Assembly: GCA_051294905.1 (NCBI GenBank)
Contig: CM119386.1
Span: 20,584,001-20,648,000, forward strand
Source: Botryllus schlosseri
Lineage: Eukaryota
DNA length: 64,000 nucleotides
Reading direction: 5' to 3'
Shown here piece after piece: positions 4,782-54,968 of this stretch. The translations under genes and the position numbers were made by a program. Numbering within the stretch: position 1 is the first letter of the stretch; every line of letters starts with the position of its first letter. Below the pieces are notes generated by a model that did no database searches, had not been told where the DNA came from, and saw only the letters and a list, made by a program, of their open reading frames with translations.

Positions 4782-4980
4782 CATGACTCAGCAGATTTCC
4801 AGTTACGAGGTTTCATTTTTTTCCGTTTACGCCCATTACGTTAAATAATACAGTTAACACCTATTATAAACGATGCACTGCCTTTCATTTATGCTTCTTT
4901 ACATAACTAACTTACCATGACTTAGCATATTTCTAGTTACGAGGTTTCAGTTTTTTCCGTTTATGCCCATTACGTAAAAT
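4782..4980 (-). promoter_or_regulatory. Two ~134-bp-period direct repeats, enhancer-like, downstream of env2 of element A
   Basis: CATGACT(C/T)AGCA...AGTTACGAGGTTTCA...TTCCGTTTA(C/T)GCCCATTACG at ~4782 and ~4916; AP-1-like TGACTCA 4784-4790; minus-strand TATAAAA near 4755-4761 and AATAAA at 4718-4723. Confidence 0.5.
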
Positions 4981-5154
4981 ACTTCACTTGAAACCAATCA
5001 CAAACTATGCATCGCCGGGGTTATTTTTATATTCCCGATGCCTATCACAAGTTTACTTAAGAATTTCCCAAAGTTATAAAATTGCATCTCATACTCCCCT
5101 ATCCTAACTACATAACGAACTTACACCTAACTTCAAGAATCAATTCTCTTACCT

Positions 5155-8100
5155 TCAAATCTCGTTATCCTCTGCTGTGTTTCGTATTACCCTTATCGCC
5201 ATCCATTGACTTGTTCCGTTACGCCTCCTCGTGTTCCTCAGATGACTTAGGGTTCTACGCCGACGACATCTTATACAACCAACCCACAACACAATCACCA
5301 GAGCTATCAACCCTGTTACCACCAATATTACAACCACTGGTTCCATGATAGGTATCAGTTTCGCACCTTCCATAATAATCCTATCGATCAAGGATAATTC
5401 TCTTACCTTATATCCACCTTCCATCATCACCAGTTCGTGCAGCCATCGAGTATAGTTGTAGTCAACGAAATCTGTGGTTGTCTTCCCCGCGGTGGTTCTT
5501 GATATTCGGGAATACTCAGGAGCGGGTGTTCCCAAACTTTGGTTTTTCTGCCCAGGCGGTGGTGACGCGTCAGTCATCGTTGACTCCAAGGTAGTATTCA
5601 TCAGTTCGACACTCCTCGGGGACGAGTCGTCTTTGTCGTCTCCTGTTGAATACAAAGCAGTTGTTCCGGTACTTACCTTACGGTTGTGGTCCGGGCTTTG
5701 GTAGTCCGTTCCGATGTCGGTTCCGTCATCATCTCTGGAGTCCTGCAGCGCGTCTGCAGTGGTAATCGGATGCACTCGCGTTGTTGTGGACACCTCACCG
5801 CTGATTTTCGTCGTTCTTTCGGGTAGGTTACGTGGATTGGTTGGCAACTGTTGCTTCCAATGAGTCGAATAGGTTGGTTTGGCATTGTCATTTTCCCCCC
5901 TTTTTTTAGCCATCGATTGCGATCGCCAAGCTTGCACCAGCGTCGTTTTCATTCGCCATCCTAGAGTTAGAGATGGTAGGTGTCTCAGCGCTGTAGTCTT
6001 TGGTACTGTTGTTGTTAGCCGTTCAACGGTCACCAAATGTGCGACGTCGTCCTCCTGATCCCTTGGAATCTTGCTTGTTTCGGTATAGTTAGGTAGAGGG
6101 CTAGTCGGTATATAGGCAGTTCTATTCGCCTCAGGTGCAGTATTCCCGTCTACATCTCGATCGGAGGAAACCTGGTAGGGAACCGTAGTTCCTGCAAAAC
6201 CGGGCCAATCAGTCTCTTCTAACCTTTGGTCGGTTATTTTCGTTGGCGTGGTGGTCTCGTGAGTCATTTCTCTAGTTATTCTCGCCTCTACCGATTTCCT
6301 TTGTTTCGTCAGTTCTTTTCCCCGTTTCGTGATTACCTGGTGCGTGGGCGGGTACCTTGATAACGACATCTCTTCAGTGGCGGTCGTTACTCCTTCCCAA
6401 GTCAGATGCGGCGTCGGGAGACTGTTTGCTGGTTTCTCTTGCTCACTTGGTGTTACCCCATGTCCATTTTCCCAAGCTTCCATGGTCGTACTACCCACCA
6501 TCATCGAAGTAGTTTGCGGAACTTCGGTGGTCCATGTGGTCCTAACGCGATGGTTTCCACGGTCATCATTTGCGGTTAACATCACCGTTCGAGCGGTGTA
6601 TCTCTCCCCCGCATTATTTCTATGGGCATATGGCGTATAGACCAGGGCACCATCACAAAACGTCCCCCGATAGATCCATCGAGGCTGAAATAACTTTTCG
6701 CTCCCCACTTCTGCCTGAATCAGTTTTTGTGAGGCCATATACTTCAGAAGTATCGTATTCATTGATTTTGCTTGTTCTATTAATGTCGGTCGCAGAGTAA
6801 GGTTATACCTCATGGATAGCTCCTCAAGTTGTCCCCGTGAGACGGGTCTTTCTCGCCGCGTTTCTACGTCTTCTCTTATCCGGGCCTTTAGTTGCGACTG
6901 GCATTTATTTATTTCTTCCACGTAGTGTGCCCCAAGGCGGGATAGCCAGTTTCTAATGCCTCCTCGTCCATGTTCTTCGGGTGTCCCTCGAGACGGGGAT
7001 AGTATAAACGTTTCCCACCCTTTTGAAATCAAGCAGGAACTTTGGTTACCCATGGTTGGTAAAAGTATTTCCGTCCGCGTTCGGTTTTCAGGGGCAGCAA
7101 TTTGCATTGCACCTTGCCGAGGGTCCGCAAACACGGCCTGCCCCTCGAAAGGGTCGAATAATACTCTATTGAATAGTAAGGCTGTTTTGAGATCTCCAAC
7201 AGCCGTTGAACAAACTTGTCTATTTTCCTTTAGTCCGCACCGCGATCTATTATGCAAAAGAACTGGGTAAGAGTCATACATTGCCATGCCTGAAGGTTGG
7301 GGTCTTGCCATCGTGCGTAGGAATGCCGTATCGGTTTTTCGTCCGTCGAACATCACATGCCAATGTTCCGAATATGTCTCGTTCCTTGCTTGTAGCCATA
7401 CCAGATTCTCGCTTATCTTCGGCAGAGGAGCTCTGTCGGGCCATTGATTGCTAGAAAAGGTTCTCCGCTTATCCGGCGGGTTCCCAATAATACCGGGATC
7501 GACTTCCTGTATTACAAAATCTAGGGGCAAGAAATTCTCAACCGGTTGCTCCCCCATGAAGTAGCACTCTATACACATCACTCTACTTCGACGTTTTTTA
7601 TGAGCAACACAATGGCTGAATCTATTCTGTCCGATATCCCATCCTATATGACGCCCGAACTGATAGCGACAATTTGCTTCCACTGTTCCATATTGCTCCA
7701 ACAAGTTTATGATCATTGTCTTATATACGGTTAATCGTTGTAATGTCTCGAGGGGTAGAGAATGCAAGGCTCGGGTTTCTACGTACCTCCAGAGATGTAT
7801 CACTCCCAGTCTGCCGTTGCGTCGGTACTTTATTTTTTGAGTATAGTAGTCCGCAGGGTTCAGATCCGGTGATATCCACGACTCAGTCCTTCTGCACACA
7901 CACTCCCGTTCATACGCCCAGGTTTCGTTCCAATACCTGGCGTTTTGGGATCCTATGGATGATATGGGTGCCAGTAATTTGTATAAACTTTGCGGTGCGG
8001 CTTTCAACGGACCAAACGCCGAGTCGTCAACCTGTATCTGATAGTGACGTTGAATGTCCCTTCGAGGCCAGTCCCCTCCTAACATAAAAAGCCGTGACAA

Positions 8101-8298
8101 GGGAACTCTTTGCGGCTTTGGTGGGACGTCGAAAGGTATCCATCCCGTAAAATTAAAGTCGTCGACGGACCCCACGGTCATGGCAGATAAGGGTAGTAGG
8201 TTTTCGCCAGTTTGGGTTTTCACAAAACAAGCCCACAGGATTAACAGCAGCAATCTTTGTAGTCCTTTCCATTTGTACAGGTAGTTAATTATTGGCAT
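5155..8298 (-). CDS. Second envelope glycoprotein (type I membrane; Env-SU-like N-terminal domain, Thr/Ser-rich mucin-like stalk, C-terminal TM), 1047 aa
   Basis: Signal-like N-terminus (RLLLLILWACFV), Cys-containing ectodomain, Thr-rich region, TM VVVILVVTGLIALVIVLWVGCI, basic tail; homologue at 54969-59432. Confidence 0.85.
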   Translation of the reverse strand: MPIINYLYKWKGLQRLLLLILWACFVKTQTGENLLPLSAMTVGSVDDFNFTGWIPFDVPPKPQRVPLSRLFMLGGDWPRRDIQRHYQIQVDDSAFGPLKAAPQSLYKLLAPISSIGSQNARYWNETWAYERECVCRRTESWISPDLNPADYYTQKIKYRRNGRLGVIHLWRYVETRALHSLPLETLQRLTVYKTMIINLLEQYGTVEANCRYQFGRHIGWDIGQNRFSHCVAHKKRRSRVMCIECYFMGEQPVENFLPLDFVIQEVDPGIIGNPPDKRRTFSSNQWPDRAPLPKISENLVWLQARNETYSEHWHVMFDGRKTDTAFLRTMARPQPSGMAMYDSYPVLLHNRSRCGLKENRQVCSTAVGDLKTALLFNRVLFDPFEGQAVFADPRQGAMQIAAPENRTRTEILLPTMGNQSSCLISKGWETFILSPSRGTPEEHGRGGIRNWLSRLGAHYVEEINKCQSQLKARIREDVETRRERPVSRGQLEELSMRYNLTLRPTLIEQAKSMNTILLKYMASQKLIQAEVGSEKLFQPRWIYRGTFCDGALVYTPYAHRNNAGERYTARTVMLTANDDRGNHRVRTTWTTEVPQTTSMMVGSTTMEAWENGHGVTPSEQEKPANSLPTPHLTWEGVTTATEEMSLSRYPPTHQVITKRGKELTKQRKSVEARITREMTHETTTPTKITDQRLEETDWPGFAGTTVPYQVSSDRDVDGNTAPEANRTAYIPTSPLPNYTETSKIPRDQEDDVAHLVTVERLTTTVPKTTALRHLPSLTLGWRMKTTLVQAWRSQSMAKKRGENDNAKPTYSTHWKQQLPTNPRNLPERTTKISGEVSTTTRVHPITTADALQDSRDDDGTDIGTDYQSPDHNRKVSTGTTALYSTGDDKDDSSPRSVELMNTTLESTMTDASPPPGQKNQSLGTPAPEYSRISRTTAGKTTTDFVDYNYTRWLHELVMMEGGYKVRELSLIDRIIMEGAKLIPIMEPVVVILVVTGLIALVIVLWVGCIRCRRRRTLSHLRNTRRRNGTSQWMAIRVIRNTAEDNEI

Positions 8299-8380
8299 AT
8301 TAATTTAACGTGAAAATCTGTAATTCATATAGTTGTGTTTAGTTAAGCATGAGGGTTAAGAGAGCTTCGTCGGAGATTGG

Positions 8381-10966
8381 TTACCGTCGCACTATGGGCC
8401 TGGGCTTTACGGTGTAAGATGGTGTCGACGTTATATACATTGCAAGTTGGGCGTTAGTGTTCCGCCTTTGTACGCTAGATTTTAACTTGGGACAACATAG
8501 GCTGTGGTACCTGACACAACAGAATAAGATAATCACCGCACCCAGTACAAGTCCCAAGGGGAGGAGGATGGATCCGAGGCCCGAGAAAATGCCACTCAGC
8601 CCACTTCCAAATAGACCTCCAATTGCCCCGAGTCCCTTTTGTAGGAGGTTACCGGCACCGTTTCCGACCGATTCTATCAGACTTCCGGCACCGTTCGCCA
8701 TCTCTTCTATCGTTTTGCCAAAGTTCTTCATAAATTCTTCCCCCCCCCCAGCAAACTCGAAGGGGGCTACTGACACATTCTCGTAGCGCCAATCGGAGAT
8801 ATTTACGAACACACTTCGGTTCAGGTCTTCCTTCCATACCTGTATACTGAGATCCACTTCTTCTTGAGCCTGGTTCAGACGAAGCCTGTTGGCTCGGAGT
8901 TTACCACTGATGTCGTTTGTCTCATTCACATACGTATCTTTATAGGCAGATAACTGCTGAGCATGCTCCTGCACCCGCAATGTCCCTTTCCGAATCTGTG
9001 TAAGATAGACCTTACTCGAATCGAATATGGACTTTCCAGTCAAATTAGCCAATTCTTTCATGACCAAGCGGTCGACGGCAAGTTCAGCGTCGCTCACCTC
9101 TGTGAAACTTTGAAACTGAGCGAGGGTGATGGTAGCCTGCCGCAATATCATTTGTCGGTTTTTCTCCATCATCTTTTGCATCCACACCAGTCGTCTGTCC
9201 GTCAGTGATGCCCTCACCTCCATGTCTTCAACCAATCGGTCCAGCTTTTGTTGCTGCGCCGTTTGAATTCGAGAGAGTTCGTTTATCTTTCTTCCCAGCT
9301 CGACTGATCTTTCCGTAGCCTGGATCATTCTATCGTTGATTTGATTACTCAGGTTCTCTGTTTCTTTATGCAGTTGGGAGGATACAGTTGCGACAACAGC
9401 GACGACTGACACAACGGCAAAGATTAGTGCCAGTAGGCCGAAGAGGAATCGTTTACGTCTACGTTTCCTCCCAATCCTCCTATTATTGCGCGCGATATCT
9501 CCTTTTATTTCTATAGGACCTCCCGGAAAACGGGGTCGGTTATGCTCAGGGTCGAAGTGTACCTGATCCCAAAAGGCCGCCTTCAACTGAGGCCCCCCGA
9601 CCGGATCCTGACAGTCGCTACCACTTACCCGTTTCTGACACCTAGGATCATCTGCAACCAAAGAGGGGTGCTTTCGCCAAACAGGCAGTATGTCGTAGGG
9701 TGCGACTGGTCTTTCGGCAGGTCCGTCGAACAAATTATCCCAACCAAGCCCTTGGTCATCTTGACCCTTCCAGTTCGGTAAGGACGCCTGTATCCATCTA
9801 ATCCTTCGAGGAAAATTCGTGGTGGGCAAGTCCCCCCACTTACTCTTGTTCTGAGTCGGCCAAAGATTACACGATGGAGGATGCGCGATGTTGCGTAGGC
9901 CCTTACCGGATAAGGTTGGTGAGTGATGGACGACCTGCCAACGGTGTTCATAGTTTTCCTGGGTGATCAGTCCTGACGTAGCTCGGCAGTTCTGCATAGG
10001 ATGCCACTTACGTTCCCATGCGGATTCCGCACGAATGGTATCTATTTCTTGTATTATTATGTCTGCTTGGCTCGGTTCTAAAGCAGAAATTATCCCTGTG
10101 ATATCACAAAAAACACAGGTGCCGCGTGAACCTGGCCTTGACGACACCAGGCGTTTGTCTGACGTGCGAGTCTTCCAGTCGTAGGTTATTGAATATGTTC
10201 CGGCCCAAAGCACGTTACTCGGCCAACAATGCGCAATGCTCGAGCTACTGGCGTTATATTTATTCCATCGATCAACCCGAGTCCAGTTCCAGGTATCTTT
10301 TGTCATGCGCTCTGTCCTGCAAGTCGATCTCACCGCTGAGAACCCCGCGAATGCTCGTAACATGATCAACTTGAATTTGGTCATTGCCATTAAGGTATCG
10401 TTCACATGAGACCACTCGTCCACTTCAGCCCCAGCCTTCCATTTCTGCCTAGACGTTTCCCAGGTCTCGTCCCAAAACCACCGTATCCTGACCCCATGCC
10501 CTATTGGGCGTACGAACACAGTTTCTTGGTCAAGAACGGCAAAGGTTAGGTTCGGCGAAATTTCGCTTAGTTTTCGTTGGCATAGGCAGGTTCGTTCAAA
10601 ATCCCGTACATTCGACCAATATCGCCCTCGCGGGAACGCCATTTGCTGCAATGACACCCGTTCGGCCACCACGTAACCGAAAGATTCACTATGAAAGAGT
10701 GTTGGTCGCCTGTACACGTGACGATTCCCTGTCTTATTGAAAGCGCTCATTAGGTCGTAGGTTTCCCATTGCGTATCATTCAGCCGAACCCAGTCGTCAG
10801 GTAGTGAGCCGTTGAATTCACCCAGGGTACCCTGAGTAAAGGTTCGGGCCCTGTTTGCTACAGTATCTCCGGATCTTGGCACGAAGTCCGCCGCCTCAGA
10901 CAACAAGCAATCAGATGTGCAACTGAAACCAATAATGACAGGCAGAATATAAATAGCGTAGTCCAT
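8381..10966 (-). CDS. env: Envelope fusion glycoprotein, class I-like (SU / furin site / fusion peptide / heptad repeats / TM), ~861 aa
   Basis: True ATG at 10966 (MDYAIYIL aligns with MDHAAYIL of element C; the track start at 10993 is TTG). Signal peptide, N-glycan sequons, RKRRRKR|FLFGLLALIFAVV, long heptad region, Gly-rich membrane-proximal segment, TM, Cys-rich tail. Confidence 0.9.
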   Translation of the reverse strand: MDYAIYILPVIIGFSCTSDCLLSEAADFVPRSGDTVANRARTFTQGTLGEFNGSLPDDWVRLNDTQWETYDLMSAFNKTGNRHVYRRPTLFHSESFGYVVAERVSLQQMAFPRGRYWSNVRDFERTCLCQRKLSEISPNLTFAVLDQETVFVRPIGHGVRIRWFWDETWETSRQKWKAGAEVDEWSHVNDTLMAMTKFKLIMLRAFAGFSAVRSTCRTERMTKDTWNWTRVDRWNKYNASSSSIAHCWPSNVLWAGTYSITYDWKTRTSDKRLVSSRPGSRGTCVFCDITGIISALEPSQADIIIQEIDTIRAESAWERKWHPMQNCRATSGLITQENYEHRWQVVHHSPTLSGKGLRNIAHPPSCNLWPTQNKSKWGDLPTTNFPRRIRWIQASLPNWKGQDDQGLGWDNLFDGPAERPVAPYDILPVWRKHPSLVADDPRCQKRVSGSDCQDPVGGPQLKAAFWDQVHFDPEHNRPRFPGGPIEIKGDIARNNRRIGRKRRRKRFLFGLLALIFAVVSVVAVVATVSSQLHKETENLSNQINDRMIQATERSVELGRKINELSRIQTAQQQKLDRLVEDMEVRASLTDRRLVWMQKMMEKNRQMILRQATITLAQFQSFTEVSDAELAVDRLVMKELANLTGKSIFDSSKVYLTQIRKGTLRVQEHAQQLSAYKDTYVNETNDISGKLRANRLRLNQAQEEVDLSIQVWKEDLNRSVFVNISDWRYENVSVAPFEFAGGGEEFMKNFGKTIEEMANGAGSLIESVGNGAGNLLQKGLGAIGGLFGSGLSGIFSGLGSILLPLGLVLGAVIILFCCVRYHSLCCPKLKSSVQRRNTNAQLAMYITSTPSYTVKPRPIVRR

Positions 10967-11112
10967 TGAGGTGGTATAGGCGTCGGTCCCCAATGCATAG
11001 GCTTACTATTTTATATTGAATATGATTTAATTATTGTCTGCAAAAATAGAAACATACATTGTCCGGTTTGTGGCTAACTTCCTTTCTTTATTGCGAAAGG
11101 CTTCACTGGGCT

Positions 11113-12074
11113 TTACTGAGGATTACCTTGTGTGTCAGGAATCTGATCACTAGGGTCGTCATTATTATACCGCGGGTCCAGAGATATCGTTTTCAACAGA
11201 GCCCCAAACCTTTTTTTACGGGGGTATCTTCTCTTCCAAAGCCACTCCCCCACATAATCGGCTAGTAAATGACGTGCTAGACCCCTCGATCTGTGTAAAT
11301 GATATTTCAGCGAGCTCCAGCAAGCCTCTAAATCATTGGTATGAACGCCCTGGGCAGATTTAAACGTGGTGGCGTGGTCAACTGATCCATGTTTATAGCC
11401 CTGCCCCCAACTTTCAATGCCCTTATACGATGGATAGCCATCTGTCAGAATGGTTGAACCTCTGGCTACATTCTTAATTATAAGTCTTTTCAGAACGTCC
11501 GCTGTTCGGTCAGATGTGATCTCCACAAACATGTCACCGGTACCTCGGTCCAGGCCACCGAAAGCCCAGACAGCCTTCACTGCTTGTTGACCGCTACCAG
11601 CTGCCCGTTTCCGCTTGGCCAAGTGGGTTTCGTCCAGGATTACAGTTCGGCCAACCCCGCCTAATTTCCGTTTACGTCTTTGTATGTAAGCAGAGCACAT
11701 CTTGCGCAGTTGTCCAGACCATTCTACCGTCGTACGTGCGCTGATCTCGGCCTCATGGGCCATTTGAATTTGTAGAGAGTCTTGGGCCCAAAAATAACTT
11801 AATACTAGCAGCTGGGGCAATCCAAGTTTGCTCTTTGAAAAAAATGAGTACTTGCGGATAGTAGCAGTGGTCCTACAAGATGAGCACCTCCATCTCCATC
11901 CGTCCGAAATTCTCTCGGTAGTCCGTTCTTCCTTCATCCATCTTGAGCATTCTCTGCAAATCATTTGTTTTCTCAGTAGACCCCGGCTTCTTAAAAAAGG
12001 GATGCAATCGCGTGTATGGGGTAAGGCTCCCATTTCCACCAATCGCAGCACATTGTAATCCTCGACGAAGGAGT
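11113..12074 (-). CDS. Merlin/IS1595 (ISXO2-like) DDE transposase, probably expressed from a spliced mRNA
   Basis: Zinc ribbon CREC...WRWRCSSC; catalytic motifs VILDETH, ILTDGYPSY, VDH, HTNDLEACWSSLK. ORF-track start 12099 is TTG inside a polypyrimidine tract ending CAG at 12077-12075. Confidence 0.9.
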
Positions 12075-12161
12075 CTGAAAAGTAAATAAAAAAGTACAAG
12101 TTCCTTTAACGATCGATCACTCCCCAGCAGTTAAATCTCGACGGCAGCGTCACCCTGCATC

Positions 12162-15100
12162 CTAGGCCAGGTTCTCCATCAGTATATACCCTGACGGTAT
12201 TGGCCCTTCGCACAGTATTACCTCGTGATTATGCGACTGTAAGAGTCGTAGACCTATCCTTCTGAGGTCGTTCGCCCTCATTCTCAGAACCGTTCTACGC
12301 CCACGTGCCTTTGTTGTGTTAATCTTACTCAAATGGATGAACCGTCGGTTCATTCTGTGTAGTTGGGTATCAATGATTTGACGGGCACCTTCGTCCGTCG
12401 TTGTGTGATACAGCATGTCATCGCCTAGGTACTCTTCGTATGGGGGTGGCATCCCTTTGGTGTGCCCGTGCGCTGCAGCCAGGCCTTCACCGGACATCAC
12501 TGCCCTGTCGCAATTGGCCATGATATCCTCAATTTCAGTTATCCCGAGGTCTTGTCGCAACTTGTCTTTGATTATTCCGCGAACTTCTTCCCAGGGGTGG
12601 TATCCATCGACAGAGTTTGCGCAATACTCGTGCCGACAGTGGAACATCAGGGTTCGCTGTATTTTCTCTTGTTGAAATTCTTTGTGTCCCGGGAGGGTGG
12701 CCCAGACATGAGGGTCATCATCTCTAGCAGCCATTTCCATCCAATAGGATCGGGACAATCCATCTGAAGTAAACACTTGGAACGTGCTCAAATGGATTAC
12801 CTCTTTTATCTGGAATCCGGAGAGATGATTTAGCCACCTTTGAATCAATGGCTTTGGGCTCGGGTTTTTTGCCTCATCTGTCATTCTTTTCAGGAGTCCA
12901 AAAACTCCCATGTTGTCAGTAATTATAGTGAAGGGTAAGGCGCGCAGCATCGACTGCCATTTCTCCACTGAATCCTTCAGGGCTTTAAGCTCTTTGGTGC
13001 ATGGGTCATAGGCTTTCGCCGTCGGAGTTACCCACTTTTGACTGTAGTAAGCGATCGGATACACCTCTTTGAAAGGGGGTTTTTCCCCCACATCCGTTTG
13101 AAAAATTACGGAGCCAAACCCTACATCTGATGCGTCAGTTTCCACAAAAATGGGAAGTCCTGGATCCAGATGATACAGTACCTTGGCACTGTCGAGTGCA
13201 GCTTGAGCTGTTTTGTAGTCCTGCAATAATTCTTCGGTCCAAAGCACCGGTGTCATTTTACCTCGAGTCGCTGGGACTTTTCCCGTTAGCGCATCAAATT
13301 TTGCCAACTTCAAGCTTAACTCTGGGATGTGCTCCGAGATGTAGCGCAGAGCGCCAATCCATCCTCGTAATTCGTATATATTTCGGGGTGGCGAAAGCTC
13401 CCGCAGAGCCCTTATTCTCTCAGGCTGGACCTCGATTTCTTTTCCCGTCAAGGTCGCTCCTAGGAGATTTGCCCTCCGTTTTCCAATAAAGCATTTATTG
13501 ATGCTGAGCGTCAATTTCATTTTAGCAAGCTGTTCAAATACCAACCGTAGGAGAAGCAAATGGTCGTCTACCGTTTTTGTGCTAAGGAAAATGTCGTCTA
13601 TGTAGGCCTCCATAGGCGTCGCATTCTCCTCATCCGATCGGCCATTTTGCTTCATGCGTTGGCGATACTTTTCCGTGATGGGTTTCACCGCGCATTCTTG
13701 CATGTTAGCGCTCCAAAGGGCAACTGCGGTCTTCAATCCCATCACAATCTTGCGCCATCTTACGTGCATTCCTTTGATGGCTATTCCCACATATTGCTTG
13801 GATCTTTCCGTGATATCCATGTGGAAATAGGCTTTCTTCAAATCCAGCAGGGAGAGCACTTCTCTTCCCTGGGCGAGTTGTTTTACATCTGGTACTAAGG
13901 GTGGAGGGACTTCGATTGACTTTATAGCAGCGTTCAGGGGCTGGAGATTCTGTACGACTCTCCATGATTGCTTCCACCCGTCCTCCTGCTTCTGTCTTTC
14001 ATTCATTTTTTGTGGGACGACAAAGATGGCCAGTTTCCATTCGGCAAATCCTTGCTCAATTATTCCCAGGTCCAAGAAGTTGTCCACTGCTTCTTTTAAC
14101 GCCTTCGCCTGGCCCTCCCCTTTCAGATTATAAGGTCCAGAAACAAAAGGCTTAGTCGAGGGATCCCTGAGTTCTATGTCACACTTATACTTCATGGCTT
14201 GAGGGGCTCGTAAGTGGCCACGCAGGTCCTCTAGTTCAGCTGCGAAAGGCTCATAGACGGCTTTCCAAACTTCGTCGGCAATGATGGTATTTTCCGGGGT
14301 CGTTAGATCAGGAGGTTTGTATGGAAGTTTCGCTAGTGCTACCGATTGTGCACAGAGACTTTCGAGATCCGTCTTAACGCTAAGACTGGTACCTTGTTGT
14401 AAGGTGTACGTGGTAACAGGGCCAATTATCGGCCGATGCGAATCACGTGAAAAACGGGGTTTTGGTGTTGGTGGAGAGGGGGCGAGGTTCTTCGTTGTCA
14501 GCGGGGATTCCCTACCTATCCAATCTGACCTCTGAACTCGGTGCGTGCCCACACCTACCGTCACGCCGACGGACTCAATCTCCGCCGGGGGCCCTGTTTC
14601 TGGGGAGACGTGCATCTTAAAATCCCCAGACTCCTTGTCGGACGCGCCTGGACCTACGTCCGGTTGACCGACAATAGCTGCTTCGTTTGAACCTTTTGGG
14701 AAGTTACTCATAACTGTGGCTGTCGTCCTGCATCTTTGGGCCGAATTATTACAGTTATTCGGGCAAGTGCATCCACGAGAGCTTTCAGGACCAGTTTTCT
14801 CGTGCAGGTCCTTATTTACGTCAGCCGGGATTCCGCGCTCGACGTCTTCATTAATAGTGCCAGCAGGGATTCCTGTCTCGACACTAGGGGTTTCCCGTAG
14901 GTTTCTCTCGACGTTAGTGGTATTTACCAACCCGTCGTCCGCGCCAGTGGCGATTGCCATCTCGACACTTGCGTCAGCGGCGACGGCCGGCAATAATGAC
15001 CGGCGCGCCGACTCGACGCTTATCTGATTTGCAGCTTCCATCAACCCATCGTCGGTAGCAGCGTTGCAAGGACTGTTTCCGACTCTGGTTCCATCCCGTC

Positions 15101-15632
15101 GATCGCACGAGATCTCGTCATGTAGTGTTACTAAAGACAACTCTTCGTTTGCATTAGACGGAGTTTTGAATTCAGTCGTTATGTTCGGTAATTGTTGTAC
15201 CTGATCAATCCATTTTAACCCAATAATATTGAGAGGGACTCCTTTCCCGGTTGCAAATGGAACCGGTAGTCCATCGAAATCAATTATTACCAAGGAGTCA
15301 ACGTGGGAAGAGCCCCCTATGCCGCGTAATTTCATGTCTAGGGGTTGTCGCTCCTCCCAGCTTCGTGGGTATTTGGTCTTAACAACACTTTTCATTATTA
15401 AATTGGGGATGCTTCCCGTGTCGGCCAAGAATTTAGTTTCCGTTGTGGTGTCAACCAAATACAAGAGCCGACCGCCGAATAATTCCGTAAAGTCTGGCTG
15501 TAGTGGGTTATCCGGTGTATCAAGAAATGTAAATAGGGGTAGAGAAGCATTATGTACAGTTTTTGCGTGTTGGGGTAATAAGTTATCTGGGAGCTGATTT
15601 ACCGGATCAATCAGCACCCCCAGTCGTTTTTT
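12162..15632 (-). CDS. pol: Pol: aspartic protease, spacer, reverse transcriptase, RNase H, C-terminal Tpt1/KptA-like domain; no integrase
   Basis: FLADTGS protease motif; RT WRVVQNLQPLN, LLDLKKAYF, YIDD; Ty3/gypsy-type RNase H VETDASDVG...KELKAL...TDN...DGLSR; final ~167 aa match Tpt1 motifs; no HHCC or DD35E integrase. Entered by -1 frameshift from gag. Confidence 0.93.
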   Translation of the reverse strand, partial: KKRLGVLIDPVNQLPDNLLPQHAKTVHNASLPLFTFLDTPDNPLQPDFTELFGGRLLYLVDTTTETKFLADTGSIPNLIMKSVVKTKYPRSWEERQPLDMKLRGIGGSSHVDSLVIIDFDGLPVPFATGKGVPLNIIGLKWIDQVQQLPNITTEFKTPSNANEELSLVTLHDEISCDRRDGTRVGNSPCNAATDDGLMEAANQISVESARRSLLPAVAADASVEMAIATGADDGLVNTTNVERNLRETPSVETGIPAGTINEDVERGIPADVNKDLHEKTGPESSRGCTCPNNCNNSAQRCRTTATVMSNFPKGSNEAAIVGQPDVGPGASDKESGDFKMHVSPETGPPAEIESVGVTVGVGTHRVQRSDWIGRESPLTTKNLAPSPPTPKPRFSRDSHRPIIGPVTTYTLQQGTSLSVKTDLESLCAQSVALAKLPYKPPDLTTPENTIIADEVWKAVYEPFAAELEDLRGHLRAPQAMKYKCDIELRDPSTKPFVSGPYNLKGEGQAKALKEAVDNFLDLGIIEQGFAEWKLAIFVVPQKMNERQKQEDGWKQSWRVVQNLQPLNAAIKSIEVPPPLVPDVKQLAQGREVLSLLDLKKAYFHMDITERSKQYVGIAIKGMHVRWRKIVMGLKTAVALWSANMQECAVKPITEKYRQRMKQNGRSDEENATPMEAYIDDIFLSTKTVDDHLLLLRLVFEQLAKMKLTLSINKCFIGKRRANLLGATLTGKEIEVQPERIRALRELSPPRNIYELRGWIGALRYISEHIPELSLKLAKFDALTGKVPATRGKMTPVLWTEELLQDYKTAQAALDSAKVLYHLDPGLPIFVETDASDVGFGSVIFQTDVGEKPPFKEVYPIAYYSQKWVTPTAKAYDPCTKELKALKDSVEKWQSMLRALPFTIITDNMGVFGLLKRMTDEAKNPSPKPLIQRWLNHLSGFQIKEVIHLSTFQVFTSDGLSRSYWMEMAARDDDPHVWATLPGHKEFQQEKIQRTLMFHCRHEYCANSVDGYHPWEEVRGIIKDKLRQDLGITEIEDIMANCDRAVMSGEGLAAAHGHTKGMPPPYEEYLGDDMLYHTTTDEGARQIIDTQLHRMNRRFIHLSKINTTKARGRRTVLRMRANDLRRIGLRLLQSHNHEVILCEGPIPSGYILMENLA

Positions 15633-18484
15633 GAGAGTCTCAAGCCTTGTTCTAGTTCCTCATCCGTCCAATGCGAGGCGTCATAGCGACGTGGAGGACG
15701 GCGATATAGCGGTTCCGTCCAGGCCACTTGGCTATTGCCCTGGTTCGGTTGTTCAGGTGGGCCCTGAGGACCCCACTGATCCCTATCATGCCAGTGGGTT
15801 CTATCTCTATTTTTTGGCCTAGAGTCATAATAGGCCTCGCACAAGGCAGTTCTCTGTGTCAGAGAGGGAGAACCTTGGGTGGCAAGGTATCGGTCGAGGT
15901 CCGGGACCGTCAATATGTTATTCCTTGCAAGGAAAGGCTCCCAGTTGCGTTTTGTGGACTCCTTAACGCGTGGGGGTACCGGTCGTATTCGTTTGCGAAC
16001 TACCCAACCTAAGGTATCATCCTTGGCAATCACCTCCTCATTTAGCCAAAGCACGAATTTTGCCACGCAATTACGGGATTGGTGTCCCGGGGCCTTACAA
16101 TAATAACATACGGATAAGGACTGCCCCTGAGGGGGGTTCAGATACAAGCCTAGAGGGGCGAAAATGTTGGGGTTCCCAAGAAAATTATACCTCTCACCTT
16201 GGCTCTCCGCGATGCGGAGGGCTTCCTGACTGCTAGACGGCGTGATTTCCTGGCTGTCCCCGCCGATTCCAGAGTCCTGCGTATTCATCACCCGAGGTCT
16301 CCGGTTCGAAGTACTTGGCCCCTGACTTGTTTGAGGAGATCTGGAGTTCCGTGCTGGTGGAACGCTCGGTCCATTCGATGCGTTGCGCCCATTTTGTGTT
16401 CGGGAAGGTTTGGCCCTGGTAGCCGGGCCCTGTCTGCCAAATCCATTTCCACTCATTACATTGGTAGGAAAACGGTTGGTCTTTGCGCCGCGAGGAGGGC
16501 CACGTCGTGGCTGCGAAGCTTGCCCGACGCCGACGGGCTGCCGTGGCGACATATTCCCCGTCGGTCTGGGTGGTGTCCCCCCGATCATGTGCAGAGGTTG
16601 TTGGGGTGAGGGTGGTTGCACCATCGGAAGTGGTGGTGTAGTCGGTGGAGGAGGGGTGTTTATTCGTTCATCTCCACCCCCGTGAGTAGGGTAACTGTGC
16701 ATCATGGGTCCTGCAGGCTGAACATTATATATGTGTACAGGCGGTAGGGGCGACATTGCTTCACGCGTCTTTCTGGCCTCCCGAGTGGTGGGTCGTACCT
16801 CTTGTTCATCCAAGAACTCAGAATTCCAGTACAGCTGCAAATCCTCTGCCACCTCTTGCCAGGACCTGCTATCCCATCCCCGCATCAGCAGTCTAAGTGC
16901 TTCTGGTAATCGTTGTCTTAGGTTGCGGAAAAGTCGCAGCCCATCCGGATTCTCGTTGATTTCCGCCTCCATATCTATCTCTAGTTGCTTTAGGGCGCTA
17001 TTCAACAGCGGAAGAGGTTCGTCTTCCCACTGATAATTCCTCCGGAAGTCGTTGATGACTTTTTCATTGTTAACCAAGCCTTGCGGGTTGGATAGCGACA
17101 ATGATTTCATGACCGAAACCCATTTTGCATTTCCCGAGTTGGTGTTGAAGAAATTCCCTAGCTGATTAGCTTGTTTGAGGCGACCCGCACTTCTCAACTT
17201 CTTCTGCATGGCATTAGCCAGGATGATATCAGTATCAGTGCCGCCCTCACCGTGTCGTATACGCCTCATCGTATTAGCCATCCACTTTAGAAGTGGCATG
17301 TCCCCAGGGTCCATCATTAGCTGTAGCATCTCCTTTTCGGACTGGAACCTTTCGGGCGTAGTCAACACCGGGTTTACGGCATCATTCCGTGGTTGTTCTC
17401 GCGGAAGTCTCGATCTACCTTCGCTTTCTCTTGGGGTAGATGTGTATCGAGGTAATCTGAGGTATTCAGCGATGTCCGAAATATCCTCTGCGGGTTCGCT
17501 TGGGTTGGGCCGACCAGAGTCCCGTTGAAGCGTCCGCGTGGTTTCCCGAATGGCCTCCCGTGCCTCCGCTATTTGTCTACCCAATCTGTCCAATTGGGCG
17601 TCAGTATCTTCCCCCGAGTCTTCAGGCTCTTCGCTTTCGCCTTGTCGGTAGTTCGTTCTCCCTTCCTGAAAGGTAACGCGCCTTGTTGGAGTGCTGGCCG
17701 CACCTTGTGTCCTGGTCCGGGTTCCTTCGGCTGCTCGTTGATCGTCGAGCCATGCGCCGAGCCGTTCTCGAGCGTGTGCATAGTCCTCGTCTGAATCTGG
17801 TCCAGTGTCTGTTCCGGTTCCACTCAGCTGAAATAGACTGGGTGTATCGACTAGGCTCCCCCTTCGTCTTTCGGGGCGTGTCCCATTCCAAACTGGAAAG
17901 CATGGAGTCGTTTTTGGATGAGAATCTGATGGCGACTTCGGCTTGGAACCTGGCAACGTAGGGTAGACTGTCGTTACGGTATGGCAATCCAGGCCCTTTT
18001 GGACTGTAAACGTGGGCAGTGGCGCTGTTGCCCTGGACGATTTCCCAACGGGCGGATCATACGCCGGGGGAGGTGCTGTAGCCATTACGGACAGGGGAGA
18101 AGGTGGTGGTGGTTTACTTTCAACCACTTGGGCATGGGCTTTGCCCAGTTCAAATTCCGATTTCAGAATCTCACTGAGGACTTCAGTGGAGACTTTCCCG
18201 CTAACCTTCGAAGTTGCATCGCATACTGCTTTGAGGTCGGCTTGAGCTCGCCTGACTTCTTTCTTGGCTTTTTCCAGCCCCTTCATTGTCTCGGGCAGAG
18301 TTGATTTGACTTCTTTTAGTACCTTCGTTTGATCAGCCACGTCTTTTGCCAACTGTCTTTCTTGTTGTCTGACGCCTTCGTGGCGTTTTTGCGTGGCTTT
18401 CAGTAGCTTGATGCCCTGCTCGAGCTCGCCTGCCGCCTTTGACGACTTATTCTTCTTTTTAAATAATTTTAGCATTTTTCGCAT
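15611..18484 (-). CDS. gag: Gag polyprotein, 957 aa
   Basis: Upstream of and overlapping pol; basic N-terminus, coiled coil, PPAY and YPTL late-domain-like motifs, single CCHC knuckle CYYCKAPGHQSRNC. Confidence 0.9.
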   Translation of the reverse strand: MRKMLKLFKKKNKSSKAAGELEQGIKLLKATQKRHEGVRQQERQLAKDVADQTKVLKEVKSTLPETMKGLEKAKKEVRRAQADLKAVCDATSKVSGKVSTEVLSEILKSEFELGKAHAQVVESKPPPPSPLSVMATAPPPAYDPPVGKSSRATAPLPTFTVQKGLDCHTVTTVYPTLPGSKPKSPSDSHPKTTPCFPVWNGTRPERRRGSLVDTPSLFQLSGTGTDTGPDSDEDYAHARERLGAWLDDQRAAEGTRTRTQGAASTPTRRVTFQEGRTNYRQGESEEPEDSGEDTDAQLDRLGRQIAEAREAIRETTRTLQRDSGRPNPSEPAEDISDIAEYLRLPRYTSTPRESEGRSRLPREQPRNDAVNPVLTTPERFQSEKEMLQLMMDPGDMPLLKWMANTMRRIRHGEGGTDTDIILANAMQKKLRSAGRLKQANQLGNFFNTNSGNAKWVSVMKSLSLSNPQGLVNNEKVINDFRRNYQWEDEPLPLLNSALKQLEIDMEAEINENPDGLRLFRNLRQRLPEALRLLMRGWDSRSWQEVAEDLQLYWNSEFLDEQEVRPTTREARKTREAMSPLPPVHIYNVQPAGPMMHSYPTHGGGDERINTPPPPTTPPLPMVQPPSPQQPLHMIGGTPPRPTGNMSPRQPVGVGQASQPRRGPPRGAKTNRFPTNVMSGNGFGRQGPATRAKPSRTQNGRNASNGPSVPPARNSRSPQTSQGPSTSNRRPRVMNTQDSGIGGDSQEITPSSSQEALRIAESQGERYNFLGNPNIFAPLGLYLNPPQGQSLSVCYYCKAPGHQSRNCVAKFVLWLNEEVIAKDDTLGWVVRKRIRPVPPRVKESTKRNWEPFLARNNILTVPDLDRYLATQGSPSLTQRTALCEAYYDSRPKNRDRTHWHDRDQWGPQGPPEQPNQGNSQVAWTEPLYRRPPRRYDASHWTDEELEQGLRLSKNDWGC
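15626..15632 (-). promoter_or_regulatory. -1 ribosomal frameshift heptamer A AAA AAC
   Basis: X XXY YYZ heptamer in the gag frame five codons before the gag stop; pol is in the -1 frame; identical heptamer at 50408-50414 in element B. Confidence 0.85.
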
Positions 18485-18528: not shown

Positions 18529-18864
18529 TTATTGGCTAGGGGAAGTACCGTTACGAAGTAGATTACCCACGGTCGCGGTTTTGTTGTTTTCGATCACTCG
18601 CCCTTGCGTTGTAGGTGCGGAATACCTTCCGAAGATAACTGGGTCGGTCTCGTTGGCGATTGCCACAGCAAATCCGTTACGTGGGACAGTAAGTGCTTCG
18701 GCCGTTGTAGTGACGTCGTTAGAGAGACCTTCAGGGTTTGTAGTAGGAAAGAATACCGGCACGAGGTGTACGTAGACCGACGCCAACGTTATTAGCAGAG
18801 ATATAGCAGAAGTGATTACTGTCACTCCGAGCACGATTCTCACGAGGGTCGTCTTCGCGCACAT
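18529..18864 (-). CDS. Small leader ORF, putative type II membrane glycoprotein, 111 aa
   Basis: ATG start just downstream of the PBS; hydrophobic anchor at aa ~7-39; sequons NET, NKT, NGT; stops 45 nt before the gag ATG. Confidence 0.6.
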   Translation of the reverse strand: MCAKTTLVRIVLGVTVITSAISLLITLASVYVHLVPVFFPTTNPEGLSNDVTTTAEALTVPRNGFAVAIANETDPVIFGRYSAPTTQGRVIENNKTATVGNLLRNGTSPSQ

Positions 18865-19128: not shown

Positions 19129-19305
19129 CGTGTAATTAAGCCTTAATACAACCAAATACTCCAATAAATATCATGCAGACAGAATGAGGTATCTAAGCAA
19201 AACTCGGTTAAATTGGCACATAGAATATCCATCAATTATAACACAAGATAAAGCTTAAACCTATTCATATTCATGCACGATTAAATGTATTTTAAATACT
19301 CCAAG

Positions 19306-19521
19306 GTTTGTTTTCGCATACAAACTATGCGACGGCCTTTCCTGCCGAAGTGGTATCTTTCAGGGTTTGTTAACACATAATTAATGTGACGGCCTTTCCT
19401 GCCGTAAAATCTCATAGGTTTGTTTACACATATAATGCATGTGACGGCCTGTCCTGCCGTAAAGCAGCTCCGAGGTTAGTTTACACATCTAATGAATGTG
19501 ACGGCCTTTCCTGCCGTAAAG
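19306..19521. repeat. Four ~56-bp tandem repeats, enhancer-like
   Basis: Unit GGTTTGTTTACACAT...ATGTGACGGCCTTTCCTGCCGTAAA; cores at ~19330, 19387, 19441, 19498; contains forkhead-like TGTTTAC and ETS-like TTCCTG. Confidence 0.85.
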
Positions 19522-21239: not shown

Positions 21240-21615
21240 CTATGGTAGCACCTTAAACGTTTTAGAATATCTGTCGGTCTTCACCAGGGTCTTCCACCGA
21301 GGTACCGACCTATGGTACAATAGTAGCCCTAAACTTTTGGAATCTATGTCGGCCTCCTCCAAGGTCTACCACCGAGGTACCGATCTATTTTATTTAGTAT
21401 AGTCCTAATCGTTTTGGAAATTGTGTAGGTCTTCTCCAGGGTCTACCACCGAGGTACCTATCTATTTTATTTAGTATAGTCCTAATCGTTTTGGAAATTG
21501 TGTAGGTCTTCTCCAGGGTCTACCACCGAGGTACCTATCTCTATTGCACGTAGCCCTAATCGTTTTGGAAAGTTAGTCGGTCTTCTCCAGGGTCTACCAC
21601 CGAGGTACCGATCTT
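21240..21615. repeat. Five ~74-77-bp tandem repeats
   Basis: CCACCGAGGTACC at ~21295, 21369, 21446, 21523, 21597, each preceded by CCTAA...TTTTGGAA...GGTCTTCTCCAGGGTCT-like sequence. Confidence 0.9.
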
Positions 21616-21757
21616 ATCCAGCCTTTTAAATCTATTTTCATATTTTAAAATTCGCAATTCTTATGAATTCAAACAATCTCCGTTATCATGATAAATACTG
21701 GGGTCTGTTAACTATCGTAATTCTTGCACTTGATAAATTTTTACGAATCGAAAAGCT

Positions 21758-22572: not shown

Positions 22573-24535
22573 CCCAGTGAAAGCACCGGAGATCTATTGC
22601 CCCCCACCAAGGCTTTTTTTATTGTTTTATAAATTTTTTTTTAAATGATTTTGTACTCCGTATAACTTTTATCTTTGGTTTTCGCTTTCGTAATTTTTTA
22701 TATTATCTTTACATCATTCAGAATTTATTCATTTTTGTAATTTTTTTCACAATAGGTTTCTATTTTTAGGATTTTTTTCGTAGTGGGTATTATACTATAC
22801 AACACGCGTATATACACAATTTAATATATCTCTCCACCCCAGCCTTCCCCCCTTTCTTTTACAGGAATTGTCAGCGGTCACATTCCTTCCATCATACTAA
22901 CAACGTGTCGAATGGGAGGCGAGGTTTTCCCATAGTTAACCAAAGTGTCATACTGGATAGGAAGTGCCGAGAGTCGTGCTCATTATTTATCTACCTAGCT
23001 CCATCACGTGAGCACCTGATAGGCTGAATTTTTCCCCATTAATATTAACCATCAGACACTCAAAAGAAGACACCTCCTACCATTCGGTAAGTGCCAAGCG
23101 GTGTCATTTATATCCATAGAGTGAGGGGGGTGCCGAGAGACAGGGATGGGAGTATGCCTTCCACATAAATATACATTACTATTTACAGATCAATTTGCGG
23201 TTTAGATATAATCAATAATAATAAATTTCATATCCATCTGAGATTCTCAAGGTGTCCTGTGTTCGTCACGATCGAAATTTCACAAAAAATAATAATATAT
23301 ATACATGTAATATATAAGCAGCAATTTAAAATACTTTAAAGAGTCTCGTAGTTATATCTCCAAACTCGCGGAGCCGACTGTAGCGAGGACCAAATAAAAA
23401 GGGAAGAAATGTAAGTAAATTTAAAACTCAAATATAATTAATAGATTAGCAAAAACATTTCATAATGAAAATAGGGTGATTTTTCACGGGGCAGGGGGTC
23501 TGGGAACGTTACCCGCCTTTTGATACTATCTTCTCCTTCTTGTGACGACTTTTCGGGTGTAAGGGCTATTGCAATTGGACCACATTACCCTCATAAATGA
23601 TTGTGGCGTTAAAACAAATCATTCACTACAGCGTGCGTCCTCAATTGCATTTATACCCTGTGATTTAATATAAACTCAACACAACAGACAACAGACGTAG
23701 ACAATACAGTTTCTATGCTTATTCGAAAAATCATTTTTGTATATAAGGTGGGAATTGCGCAGCCTTGTATTCGAGTAAATGAACTATCCGTAGTCCCCGA
23801 GATGTTTTTTCAGGGGCACACTTAGCGATTCAATCACAATACAATGTCTTTTACTTTCTGGAACTTAACATAAATTTTGTGTATCGGTATAATAAATCCG
23901 TGTATATAATAAATGAAATACAAGAATACAGCTTCTACTTTAGAGCTATTCTCCAGTTACACTGTATTCTGACTCAAATTCTTCCGTTAAGTTGAGCTAG
24001 ACAGGGATGCCGAATTATTACGCTTGTCCTAATTCCCTATCAGCTATAGCCTTATTAATTTAGTTGTCTCGGCTTGTCTGGTAGTCTAATCACCACCAGT
24101 CCGTTTGCCCTATTCAGCAGCTTTCGAGGCGTGATCGCACGTTTCCTTAGGCAGAGATTGCGGCATTTAGAACGTCATGGAATGATGATATCTATACGTG
24201 GGCTTATGATACGATAGGCTGTTTTTCAACAAAGCTATGGTCAGCGATGATTCCACACAAAGGTTCGCAGCACATACCGTTCAATACAGACCTAGCCGCC
24301 CCTATCTCTGAAGTAAGTAACAAATAGTGAATGCATTATGACCCCAACCCGCCATCACTAAGGTTGGATCAAAATTGATCCCAGGCGAACAAATATGCGA
24401 TCCATATTTTTATGTGCGGTCGGATTGTTCTTGCCATCCATGTAATCCTAAATGGTGCTATACACTATCAATCAGAATAATACCTTTGCTGATTATCGCT
24501 AATACCTCGCCGCTATGAGCTATTGATTGAGCATG

Positions 24536-26178: not shown

Positions 26179-27009
26179 ATGACAAAGCCCGGAACAAACG
26201 AAGATGACATCTTGCTGAGACTGAAAAAGATGGAGAGTAAACTGGATAATACGCTCGCTGAAGTCAAAGTGTTGAAGGAAGAAAACAAGGAACTGCGCAA
26301 CATCATCTCAGAACTGCAGACTACAGCTGAAGATATCAAAAAATCTGGTTCTGCCGTAGAAGAACTGCGAGAAGAGATAGAATCTTGCAAGACTGGTATG
26401 GAATTCATGAATGCAGAATTTGAGGACACCAAAAAAAATCTAGAACGCGCCTCACAAGAATCCATGGTCAACGAGCACGACAAATTTGAGTCAACTATGA
26501 GATTCCTGAACAAAAAAATATCTGACCTAGAACGCACCAACGACAACCTGGAGCAGCAATCTCGAAACAACAACCTGGAATTTCATGGTGTTCCCCACTC
26601 CGAAAAAGAGAATCTGCCTGAAACTATCATGAAAATAGCTAACGCCTTGAAAGCTGAGATTACTGCGCCACAGATTGTGCAGTGTTATAGAGTGCGCTTC
26701 AGAAATAAGGACAAAACAGGACCCGTTATAGCCAAATTCTCTTCTGAGCAACCAAAAAAAGAATTCCTCAAAGTGAAAAAGGCCAAAAGGGATATCAAGG
26801 ACTTTGGTGTAGAAGGAATGAAACAACTCTTCCTAAACGAAAATTTAACAAATTACAGAAGTGATGTTTTCTTTGAAGCGCGAGCTGCGAAACAAAAAAA
26901 AAGCTTCAAATACCTCTGGACTGCAAATGGAAATATCTATATGAAAAAGAATGATGGTGCACCCAGAATCCACATTGAGTCAAAGGATGACCTCGATAAA
27001 CTCAAATAG
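26179..27009 (+). CDS. LINE ORF1 (coiled coil, RRM-like and C-terminal domain), 276 aa
   Basis: Long N-terminal heptads, then SRNNNLEFHGVP, GPVIAKF, LFLNENLT, YLWTANGNIYMKK typical of CR1/L2-group ORF1. Confidence 0.85.
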   Translation: MTKPGTNEDDILLRLKKMESKLDNTLAEVKVLKEENKELRNIISELQTTAEDIKKSGSAVEELREEIESCKTGMEFMNAEFEDTKKNLERASQESMVNEHDKFESTMRFLNKKISDLERTNDNLEQQSRNNNLEFHGVPHSEKENLPETIMKIANALKAEITAPQIVQCYRVRFRNKDKTGPVIAKFSSEQPKKEFLKVKKAKRDIKDFGVEGMKQLFLNENLTNYRSDVFFEARAAKQKKSFKYLWTANGNIYMKKNDGAPRIHIESKDDLDKLK

Positions 27010-27054
27010 AAACTGCTATACTGCTCTCACTGCAAACGCAACCCACACTAAAAA

Positions 27055-50100: not shown

Positions 50101-50414
50101 CCTTGTAAATTCATACGCAACGAACACCGCCTTCGCCAACTATTGGGATAAGCTAATCTCGCCATTGACGACATCATCAAATTTGGCACGCTTCCTGTAT
50201 CTGCTAAAAAATTTACATTAGTATTTATATCGACTAGGTACATCAATTCACCCCCAAAAAGCTTTGCGAAATTACATTCATCAGAATCTTTAATTTCCCC
50301 AAACATACTAAATAACGGTAATGACAAATTATTTATTATTCTCATAGTTCTATGTGGTAATAGTTCGTCTGCACACTGGTTCAAAAAATGACCCAGTGTA
50401 GCTAACCGTTTTTT
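47191..50414 (-). pseudogene. pol: Element B pol (PR-RT-RH-Tpt1-like) with a 1-nt frameshift near 49022-49030
   Basis: Collinear with element A Pol: FLADTGS, WRVVQNLQPLN, YIDD, VETDASDVG, HCRH...LFHIT...MNRRYIHF; WTQ(aa)WRVV lacks one base relative to WKQSWRVV. Confidence 0.9.
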
Positions 50415-54884: not shown

Positions 54885-54968
54885 TCAACTGCCTCCCAGG
54901 ACACCAGACTTCGACTCGGACTGACATTTGAACTTTTATGTACGACAGATTACTAGCTTAGACTAAAA

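Follow-up and report, generated by a model that had tools for sequence, protein, structure and literature searches.

Why would a retroelement carry two envelope genes side by side, and what has become of the second one? The question is raised by a 64,000-nucleotide (nt) stretch of the genome of Botryllus schlosseri (GenBank assembly GCA_051294905.1, contig CM119386.1, positions 20,584,001 to 20,648,000 of the forward strand; hereafter the window, in which coordinates without a further label are counted). Here an integrase-less, Ty3-related retroelement that we term element A occupies positions 5155-18484 with five tightly packed open reading frames (ORFs) on the minus strand, the last two of which encode the envelope-like proteins Env1 and Env2, and a further copy that has diverged from it, element B, extends from 47191 to 59432. 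A preliminary description of the locus had proposed that the two env genes are tandem paralogues, that Env2 arose by duplication of the surface (SU) domain, and that the two proteins divided fusion and attachment between them. Here we report that Env1 and Env2 are homologous and recur as a tandem pair in diverged copies of the element. On balance, we favour a history in which the whole env gene was duplicated in tandem, with Env1 as the fusogen and Env2 as a mucin-stalked protein for attachment or first contact.

Homology and anatomy of the Env1-Env2 pair

In element A, the pair comprises the following features.

8381-10966, minus strand: Env1, an intact ORF of 861 amino acids (aa) from the first ATG; the ORF opens at 10993.
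9518-10708, minus strand: Env1 head (SU-like, aa 87-483), homologous to Env2, with ten cysteines, eight of them common to Env2.
9377-9469, minus strand: Env1 polybasic motif (aa 500-506), R-x-K/R-R, and the adjoining hydrophobic, fusion-peptide-like 19-mer.
8381-9448, minus strand: Env1 fusion (transmembrane, TM) subunit, aa 507-861, described from AlphaFold2 (AF2) secondary structure and hydropathy.
8299-8380, minus strand: spacer of 82 nt between Env1 and Env2.
5155-8298, minus strand: Env2, an intact ORF of 1047 aa.
7120-8043, minus strand: Env2 head (aa 86-393), homologous to the Env1 head by hhalign, with eight invariant cysteines.
6604-7119, minus strand: Env2 post-head region (aa 394-565), a putative fusion-subunit relic with two helices and a beta-hairpin.
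5479-6603, minus strand: Env2 mucin-like stalk (aa 566-940), 26% Ser+Thr and 34% Ser+Thr+Pro, with no cysteine.
5155-5379, minus strand: Env2 anchor (aa ~974-1011) and basic cytoplasmic tail, recognized by hydropathy and by weak similarity to the element B counterpart.

BLASTP aligned Env1 with Env2 of element A over 131 columns at 27% identity (E 4e-7), with a second colinear segment (E 0.01) that spans the C...VGG...FDP block, and aligned the two proteins of element B over ~400 columns (E 2e-11). Relatives were gathered by a profile search of 1.84 billion representative proteins, which gave 48 matches, and hhalign was run on alignments of nine Env1-type and three Env2-type proteins, the latter being those of elements A and B and P0041. 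This profile-profile comparison of the two families was significant (probability 99.95%, E 1.9e-37, 286 columns) and paired Env1 87-483 with Env2 86-393. The Env2 head has eight cysteines, all of them invariant across the Env2 proteins and each paired with an Env1 cysteine, seven of them in the MAFFT alignment and the eighth in that of hhalign; the two further cysteines of the Env1 head lie within or beside Env1-specific insertions. Identity between the Env1 and Env2 heads is ~23-27%, and every motif pair quoted in the preliminary description was also paired by the alignment tools. Judged from these alignments, the homology of Env1 and Env2 is far beyond chance, and the proposed tandem paralogy is borne out.

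Env1 has a hydrophobic N-terminus and the layout of a type-I precursor, with a signal peptide and a C-terminal anchor, and its head carries eight N-glycosylation sequons. The R-x-K/R-R motif stands directly before a hydrophobic stretch in Env1 and in 12 other members of the family, in agreement with the furin site and fusion peptide by whose absence the preliminary description set Env2 apart from Env1. AF2 modelling from an alignment of 46 sequences (mean predicted local distance difference test score (pLDDT) 66.6, with the head mostly at ~90) predicted, in the fusion subunit, a helix of ~100 residues (542-643), a beta-hairpin (652-671) and a second helix (672-715), after which follow a glycine-rich segment, a membrane anchor at ~789-826 by hydropathy, and a Cys-rich tail. 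The two helices have pLDDT values of 55-80 in the AF2 monomer, a crude count of hydrophobic residues at a/d positions was moderate, and the ectodomain of the fusion subunit contains no cysteine. These features give Env1 the layout of a cleaved class-I-type fusion protein, of which both the cleavage and the fusion activity are predictions from motif and model.

The core of the Env2 head was modelled at pLDDT 75-95 (monomer, mean over the model 59.6), with its secondary-structure elements in the same order as those of the Env1 head. The post-head region of ~170 residues has predicted helices at 448-482 and 490-528 and a beta-hairpin at 541-560, and a short membrane-proximal piece that is conserved in Env2 lies between stalk and anchor. 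Motif and hydropathy scans found R-x-K/R-R followed by a hydrophobic stretch in no Env2 ectodomain, the sole hydrophobic segment being the C-terminal anchor. The preliminary description thus correctly read Env2 as a protein without furin site and fusion peptide that has a mucin stalk and a membrane anchor of its own. Across three lineages, the stalks measure 105, 375 and 825 residues, contain 26-33% Ser+Thr and 29-41% Ser+Thr+Pro, and are cysteine-free; they are presumably O-glycosylated. An origin of the stalk from DNA tandem repeats was rejected, since none occur inside the coding region.

The asymmetry in anatomy between the two proteins is real, with one detail to amend. Env1 has the cleavage site, fusion peptide, long helix and anchor, and Env2 is without the first two, but the helical module that Env2 was said to lack is partly kept there: two helices and the beta-hairpin remain by AF2, profile and BLASTP comparison, in reduced form relative to Env1.

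How much of the gene was copied can be judged from this post-head region. Local hhalign comparison of Env1-type fusion subunits with the Env2 post-head region scored 28.1 and paired the surroundings of the two beta-hairpins with each other, against a maximum of 18.7 (mean 11.5, standard deviation 1.8) among 200 column-shuffled controls. BLASTP aligned Env2 94-559 along residues 145-694 of the Env1-type protein P0035, beyond the P0035 cleavage site, and matched Env2 376-559 to P0046 (E 2e-4) and Env2 341-560 to P0044 (E 5e-4), both of which are mostly fusion subunit. A deeper Env1-type profile gave, in hhalign, a single colinear alignment of Env1 32-677 with Env2 26-566, of which only the part beyond residue 400 is independent, the head part being inflated because the profile held the first 400 residues of both Env2 proteins. 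In the AF2 models, the order of helix and then beta-hairpin occurs at matching places in Env1 and Env2. We consider it moderately well supported by these comparisons that the post-head region is a relic of the fusion subunit, corresponding to about its first half. Such a relic would mean that the whole env gene was copied and not the SU domain alone; the duplication of an SU domain only, as first proposed, is at odds with the similarity that the post-head region keeps to the fusion subunit.

The tandem Env1-Env2 arrangement is kept in at least five diverged copies. In element B the spacer measures 84 nt. The order pol-DDE-Env1-Env2 (DDE being a transposase-like ORF described below), or the part of it that is covered, was found on three further public contigs (Logan). 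One, from SRR25569776, has the Env1 fragment P0001 and, 83 nt on, another long ORF; the second, from SRR25569784, has the Env1-type P0033 and, ~97-98 nt on, P0041, built like Env2 with a head, a short stalk rich in Ser/Thr and an anchor, and without a cleavage site; and the third has pol, DDE and the Env1-type P0032, followed by an ORF that is cut by the contig end. P0065 is an additional Env2 fragment, and scans of IMG/VR and of JGI metagenomes found no relatives.

A short block common to the spacers of element A (8299-8380, minus strand) and element B (54885-54968, plus strand) ends in ...ACAG, ~25 nt before the Env2 ATG. This block may serve as a splice acceptor or as some other signal for expression.

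History and role of Env2

We propose that a single ancestral env was duplicated whole and in tandem in the ancestor of a sub-lineage of this integrase-less, Ty3-related retroelement. Env1 would have retained the full class-I-type fusion apparatus and is the likely fusogen. Env2 would have retained the head fold, the eight cysteines (presumably four disulfides) and, uncleaved and shortened, a stump of the fusion subunit. Its cleavage site and fusion peptide would have disappeared, and the stalk, with an anchor belonging to Env2, would have taken the place of the subunit's distal half. Having lost the cleavage site and the fusion peptide, Env2 would be unable to act as a class-I fusogen. If both proteins are incorporated into particles, Env2 would hold its fast-evolving head far above the membrane for first contact and attachment, and Env1 would then fuse. 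Each residue of an extended mucin domain adds roughly 0.2-0.25 nm to its length, so that the Env2 head would stand at least tens of nanometres away from the membrane and higher than any Env1 spike reaches.

The rates of change bear on this role. Between elements A and B, Env1 is 70% identical overall (head 68%, fusion subunit 76%), and Env2 is 39% identical in the head, 30% in the post-head region and 35% over its first 556 residues; for comparison, pol is ~55% and the DDE ORF 68% identical. Env2 is the fastest-changing protein of the element, with a divergence about twice that of Env1 as measured on protein identity, synonymous sites being saturated between elements that are 35-70% identical in protein. 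Such a rate would fit a host-facing role, and among the roles that Env2 may have we think that attachment comes first, followed by interference, decoy or shield, and then by regulation of Env1 through docking.

Env2 might instead be a fusion-dead env copy that blocks receptors and interferes with superinfection, serves as a decoy, or spreads a glycan shield over Env1 and cell-surface molecules, which we regard as unlikely though credible. An Env1-homologous head that is without a fusion peptide and is carried by a long mucin-like stalk with its own anchor would suit such a part as well as it suits attachment, and there are precedents for both of its forms. Fv4, Refrex-1 and suppressyn are host-domesticated, fusion-defective Env proteins that cause receptor interference, and the mucin-like domains of filovirus GP sterically shield surface proteins. 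Env2 is like the domesticated proteins in combining a receptor-binding-type head with the loss of fusion; they, however, are single host loci, whereas Env2 is part of the element itself and is kept beside the fusogen in several lineages. Heads that are only ~23-27% identical do not imply that Env1 and Env2 share a receptor, and a pure shield would not need a conserved, disulfide-bonded head, yet this head is kept in all three Env2 lineages.

Several observations weigh against the proposed whole-gene duplication and attachment role. The Env2 post-head region resembles the fusion subunit weakly, with an hhalign probability of 8% when taken alone, and posterior confidence is low over most of the post-head stretch in the alignment of Env1 32-677 with Env2 26-566. 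Confidence in the AF2 models, both of them monomers, is moderate (pLDDT 66.6 and 59.6), and relaxed constraint would explain the faster divergence of Env2 as well as a receptor or immune arms race would. A neighbour-joining (NJ) tree of the heads, built from distances of an alignment without gap-rich columns and taken as supporting evidence only, places the Env2 proteins in one clade (98% bootstrap) and the Env1 proteins of DDE-bearing elements in another (76%), and gives its deeper nodes 19-49% support. Nor does the Env2 head stand clearly nearest to the Env1 with which it shares an element. Because of this affinity of the Env2 head and the weak deep nodes, duplication in situ is not proven against acquisition from a related element.

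It is on these last points that a second env captured by recombination from a related element, which would make the two genes xenologues, has to be weighed; we find it doubtful and give it little credence. Besides the weak deep nodes, capture would account for Env2 heads that score at least as well against the Env1-type proteins P0037, P0032 and P0035 as against the Env1 of their own element, and element B shows that the family rearranges. The low scores against the Env1 of elements A and B are, however, explained by the Env1-specific insertions, and the Env2 proteins, in addition to forming a well-supported clade, always stand directly after Env1, in the same orientation, with spacers of ~82-98 nt. 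Duplication of the element's own env therefore remains the history that we prefer.

Still less probable, in our judgement, is a regulatory partner that docks on Env1 oligomers by means of its helical stump and controls the triggering of fusion, much as some attachment proteins trigger a separate fusion protein. The ~80 residues of predicted helix and the beta-hairpin that Env2 keeps, and which match the core of the Env1 fusion subunit, could serve this purpose, as such parts usually mediate oligomerization in class-I proteins. The post-head region is nevertheless the fastest-diverging structured part of Env2 (30% identity), and an interface with the Env1 fusion subunit (76%) would be expected to be better conserved. 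To a decaying, functionless duplicate, which the loss of the fusion machinery and the twofold divergence might suggest, we give almost no weight and strongly disfavour it, since simple decay is ruled out by frames of 1047, 1487 and 722 codons that stay open in three lineages at 25-39% identity, with signal peptide, eight cysteines, stalk, anchor and basic tail kept.

The carrier element and its relatives

The other ORFs of element A, and the ORFs of element B, are as follows.

15611-18484, minus strand: element A gag-like ORF with a CCHC zinc knuckle.
12162-15617, minus strand: element A pol, with Ty3-type reverse transcriptase (RT) and RNase H and a C-terminal Tpt1/KptA-like domain, without rve integrase.
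11113-12099, minus strand: element A DDE ORF with an IS1595/ISXO2-type transposase domain (Pfam PF12762, E 3.3e-13), between pol and Env1.
47191-50384, minus strand: element B pol, on the strand opposite to the DDE-Env1-Env2 block, with one frame break.
50408-51082, minus strand: element B gag remnant, about the last fifth of gag only.
51160-52176, plus strand: element B DDE transposase-like ORF, 68% identical to the element A copy.
52296-54884, plus strand: element B Env1, 862 aa.
54969-59432, plus strand: element B Env2, 1487 aa, with a stalk of 825 aa.

The gag zinc knuckle and the Ty3-type RT and RNase H of element A are traits of long terminal repeat (LTR) retroelements (Ortervirales, Metaviridae-like), and among solved structures pol matched best a caulimovirus-type 'Enzymatic polyprotein', with foamy-virus and Ty3 RT next. 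The rve integrase (PF00665) was found in no ORF of elements A and B or of the close pol relatives. No LTRs were found around element A by repeat search or by blastn at word sizes 11 and 7, within a 3' flank that extends only 5.1 kb to the window edge, so that a more distant repeat is possible; likewise, the related loci L001-L003 have no long terminal direct repeats. As the element is without a retroviral integrase, the DDE ORF may be a replacement integration enzyme. The Tpt1/KptA-like RNA 2'-phosphotransferase domain fused to RT-RNase H (12162-12800, minus strand) is also present in the pol of element B; when scanned alone it exceeded the Pfam cut-off of 26 bits with a score of 29, and it matched solved RNA 2'-phosphotransferases at E 1.4e-4. 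We know of no retroelement with a Tpt1-like domain, and literature searches found nothing relevant on a retroelement that combines RT, an IS1595 DDE and Tpt1. The domain might point to a step of RNA ligation or circularization.

Element B is rearranged: a gag-pol piece, in which about the first four fifths of gag are gone, stands head-to-head, within ~80 nt, with an intact DDE-Env1-Env2 block. This arrangement could be an inversion or the junction of two truncated copies.

More distant pol relatives (L001-L004, 37-41% identity) have no integrase and carry a single Env1-type env, which in L001-L003 is a broken gene. At the position of the DDE ORF, three of the four have an ORF with a CUB domain (L001:6015-6491, L002:13037-14311 and L003:13127-14153), and the env of L003 has a CUB domain in its N-terminal part. 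In that lineage, this adhesion domain of host type may fill the accessory surface role that Env2 has in element A. An N-terminal extension of the L001 env was tested as a hidden second head and did not prove to be one. The pol of a CUB-bearing relative, P0002, has 31 members at ≥90% identity, on many contigs of up to megabase size, which indicates recent amplification in its host. In the remaining locus, L004, gag and a pol with protease, RT and RNase H are accompanied by a 200-aa ORF, a 1110-aa env and a 236-aa ORF, and the element is flanked by inverted repeats of ~4 kb that are 99% identical (L004:1-3963 and L004:17910-21868); these could be a terminal structure, could belong to a palindromic element that received the insertion, or could have arisen in the assembly.

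Around elements A and B, the window holds several further features. Directly upstream of the element A gag start, an ORF of 111 aa with a hydrophobic segment (18529-18864, minus strand) had no family match, and no counterpart was noticed in element B. Segments of 0.4-0.6 kb at 23412-24044 and 63588-63997, ~5 kb upstream of the element A gag and ~4.2 kb downstream of the element B Env2, are 75-78% identical and have the same orientation relative to the elements; they could represent a cis element or an unrelated host repeat. A second, short match joins 207-294 with 44115-44202. Tandem arrays with units of 63-134 nt (4782-5016, 19293-19520, 21251-21640, 59765-59999 and 60434-61028) all lie in non-coding flanks, just downstream of each Env2 and upstream of the element A gag. 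Another mobile element, resembling a long interspersed nuclear element (LINE), occupies 26179-29967 (plus strand); a coiled coil and a baculovirus FP domain 2 lie in its ORF1, and more than one ORF makes up its endonuclease/RT. A separate ORF of 363 aa with an RNase H domain lies at 44607-45698 (plus strand), and Rfam had no match within the window.

Relation to known glycoproteins and meaning of the pair

Pfam returned no family match for Env1 or Env2. Sequence searches of the PDB gave best E values of 0.057 (HA2, with a profile) and of 0.066 and 0.37 (with single proteins), all of them meaningless, and Foldseek had no match at E ≤ 0.001 for the Env1 model in PDB or BFVD, or for the Env2 model in PDB, the best Env1 matches having E 0.03-0.04 and a template modelling score (TM-score) of ≤0.2. 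An F or gB fold was absent among the best 50 Foldseek matches of each search. Hemagglutinin-esterase (nidovirus/influenza C; SGNH esterase plus lectin fold) ranked first or second in all three Foldseek searches at insignificant values (E 0.03-0.2, probability ≤0.28, TM-score ≤0.2); we set it aside as an identification, and the likeness of the models to it is at most a weak lead. The Env1/Env2 glycoprotein family is new to the structure and family databases searched.

Compared with the class-I fusion glycoproteins (retroviral Env SU/TM, influenza hemagglutinin (HA), paramyxovirus F and coronavirus S), Env1 is alike in its type-I precursor, polybasic site with hydrophobic peptide, long predicted helices and anchor. 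It differs in having no sequence or fold match to them, in its cysteine-free fusion-subunit ectodomain, and in the beta-hairpin between the helices. A gamma-type retroviral Env, in whose TM ectodomain CX6CC, the partner of an SU CXXC, stands with an immunosuppressive-domain motif, was considered in particular, and C-x-x-C does occur in both heads (Env1 C284/C287, Env2 C242/C245); this identity was rejected, as the cysteine-free ectodomain of the Env1 fusion subunit excludes CX6CC.

Other systems share the proposed principle that one protein fuses and a heavily glycosylated other attaches or shields. Pneumoviruses and paramyxoviruses enter by F together with G, H or HN, an attachment protein that is of type II and unrelated to F; Env2, in contrast, is a type-I paralogue of the fusogen, and no homology was found to these proteins or to filovirus GP, whose mucin-like domain offers the same parallel. 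Large DNA viruses are known to have duplicated surface-protein genes whose roles then diverged, as with the tandem surface glycoproteins gD, gG, gI and gE of the alphaherpesvirus US region. These differ from the Env pair in belonging to DNA viruses, in having unrelated folds and in a duplication that did not start from the fusion protein.

Among retroelements, the nearest comparison is with the env-carrying Ty3/gypsy elements, or errantiviruses, of a survey that chose them for a full-length integrase, identified their LTRs and found each env to be either of F type or of herpesvirus gB type (Chary and Hayashi, eLife 2026, PMC13524379). Element A is like them an invertebrate-type retroelement with Ty3-related RT/RNase H and an env after pol, but it has two paralogous envs of an unmatched family, is without rve integrase, and no LTRs were found around it. 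We found no mention of a second or tandem env in the text of that paper, and limited literature searches yielded no report of tandem env paralogues in one retroelement.

Where enveloped viruses have separate proteins for attachment and fusion, the origin of this two-protein entry is usually obscure because the two are unrelated. In the elements described here, the second surface protein is traceable to a copy of the fusogen, and intermediate features can still be read in it: the head and a stump are kept, and the cleavage site and fusion peptide are lost. The pair thereby opens the origin of a two-protein entry system to comparative study. The carrier element may itself be new. We suggest, tentatively and as a possibility that we hold to be less than even, that it represents an undescribed lineage of enveloped reverse-transcribing elements, without retroviral integrase or seen LTRs and with an IS1595-type DDE and a Tpt1-like domain, in which two-glycoprotein entry arose from the element's own duplicated fusogen, convergently with F plus G/HN, and on a glycoprotein fold without known relative. 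In departing from the retroviral plan, the carrier bears on how reverse-transcribing elements acquire and exchange their modules for integration and entry.

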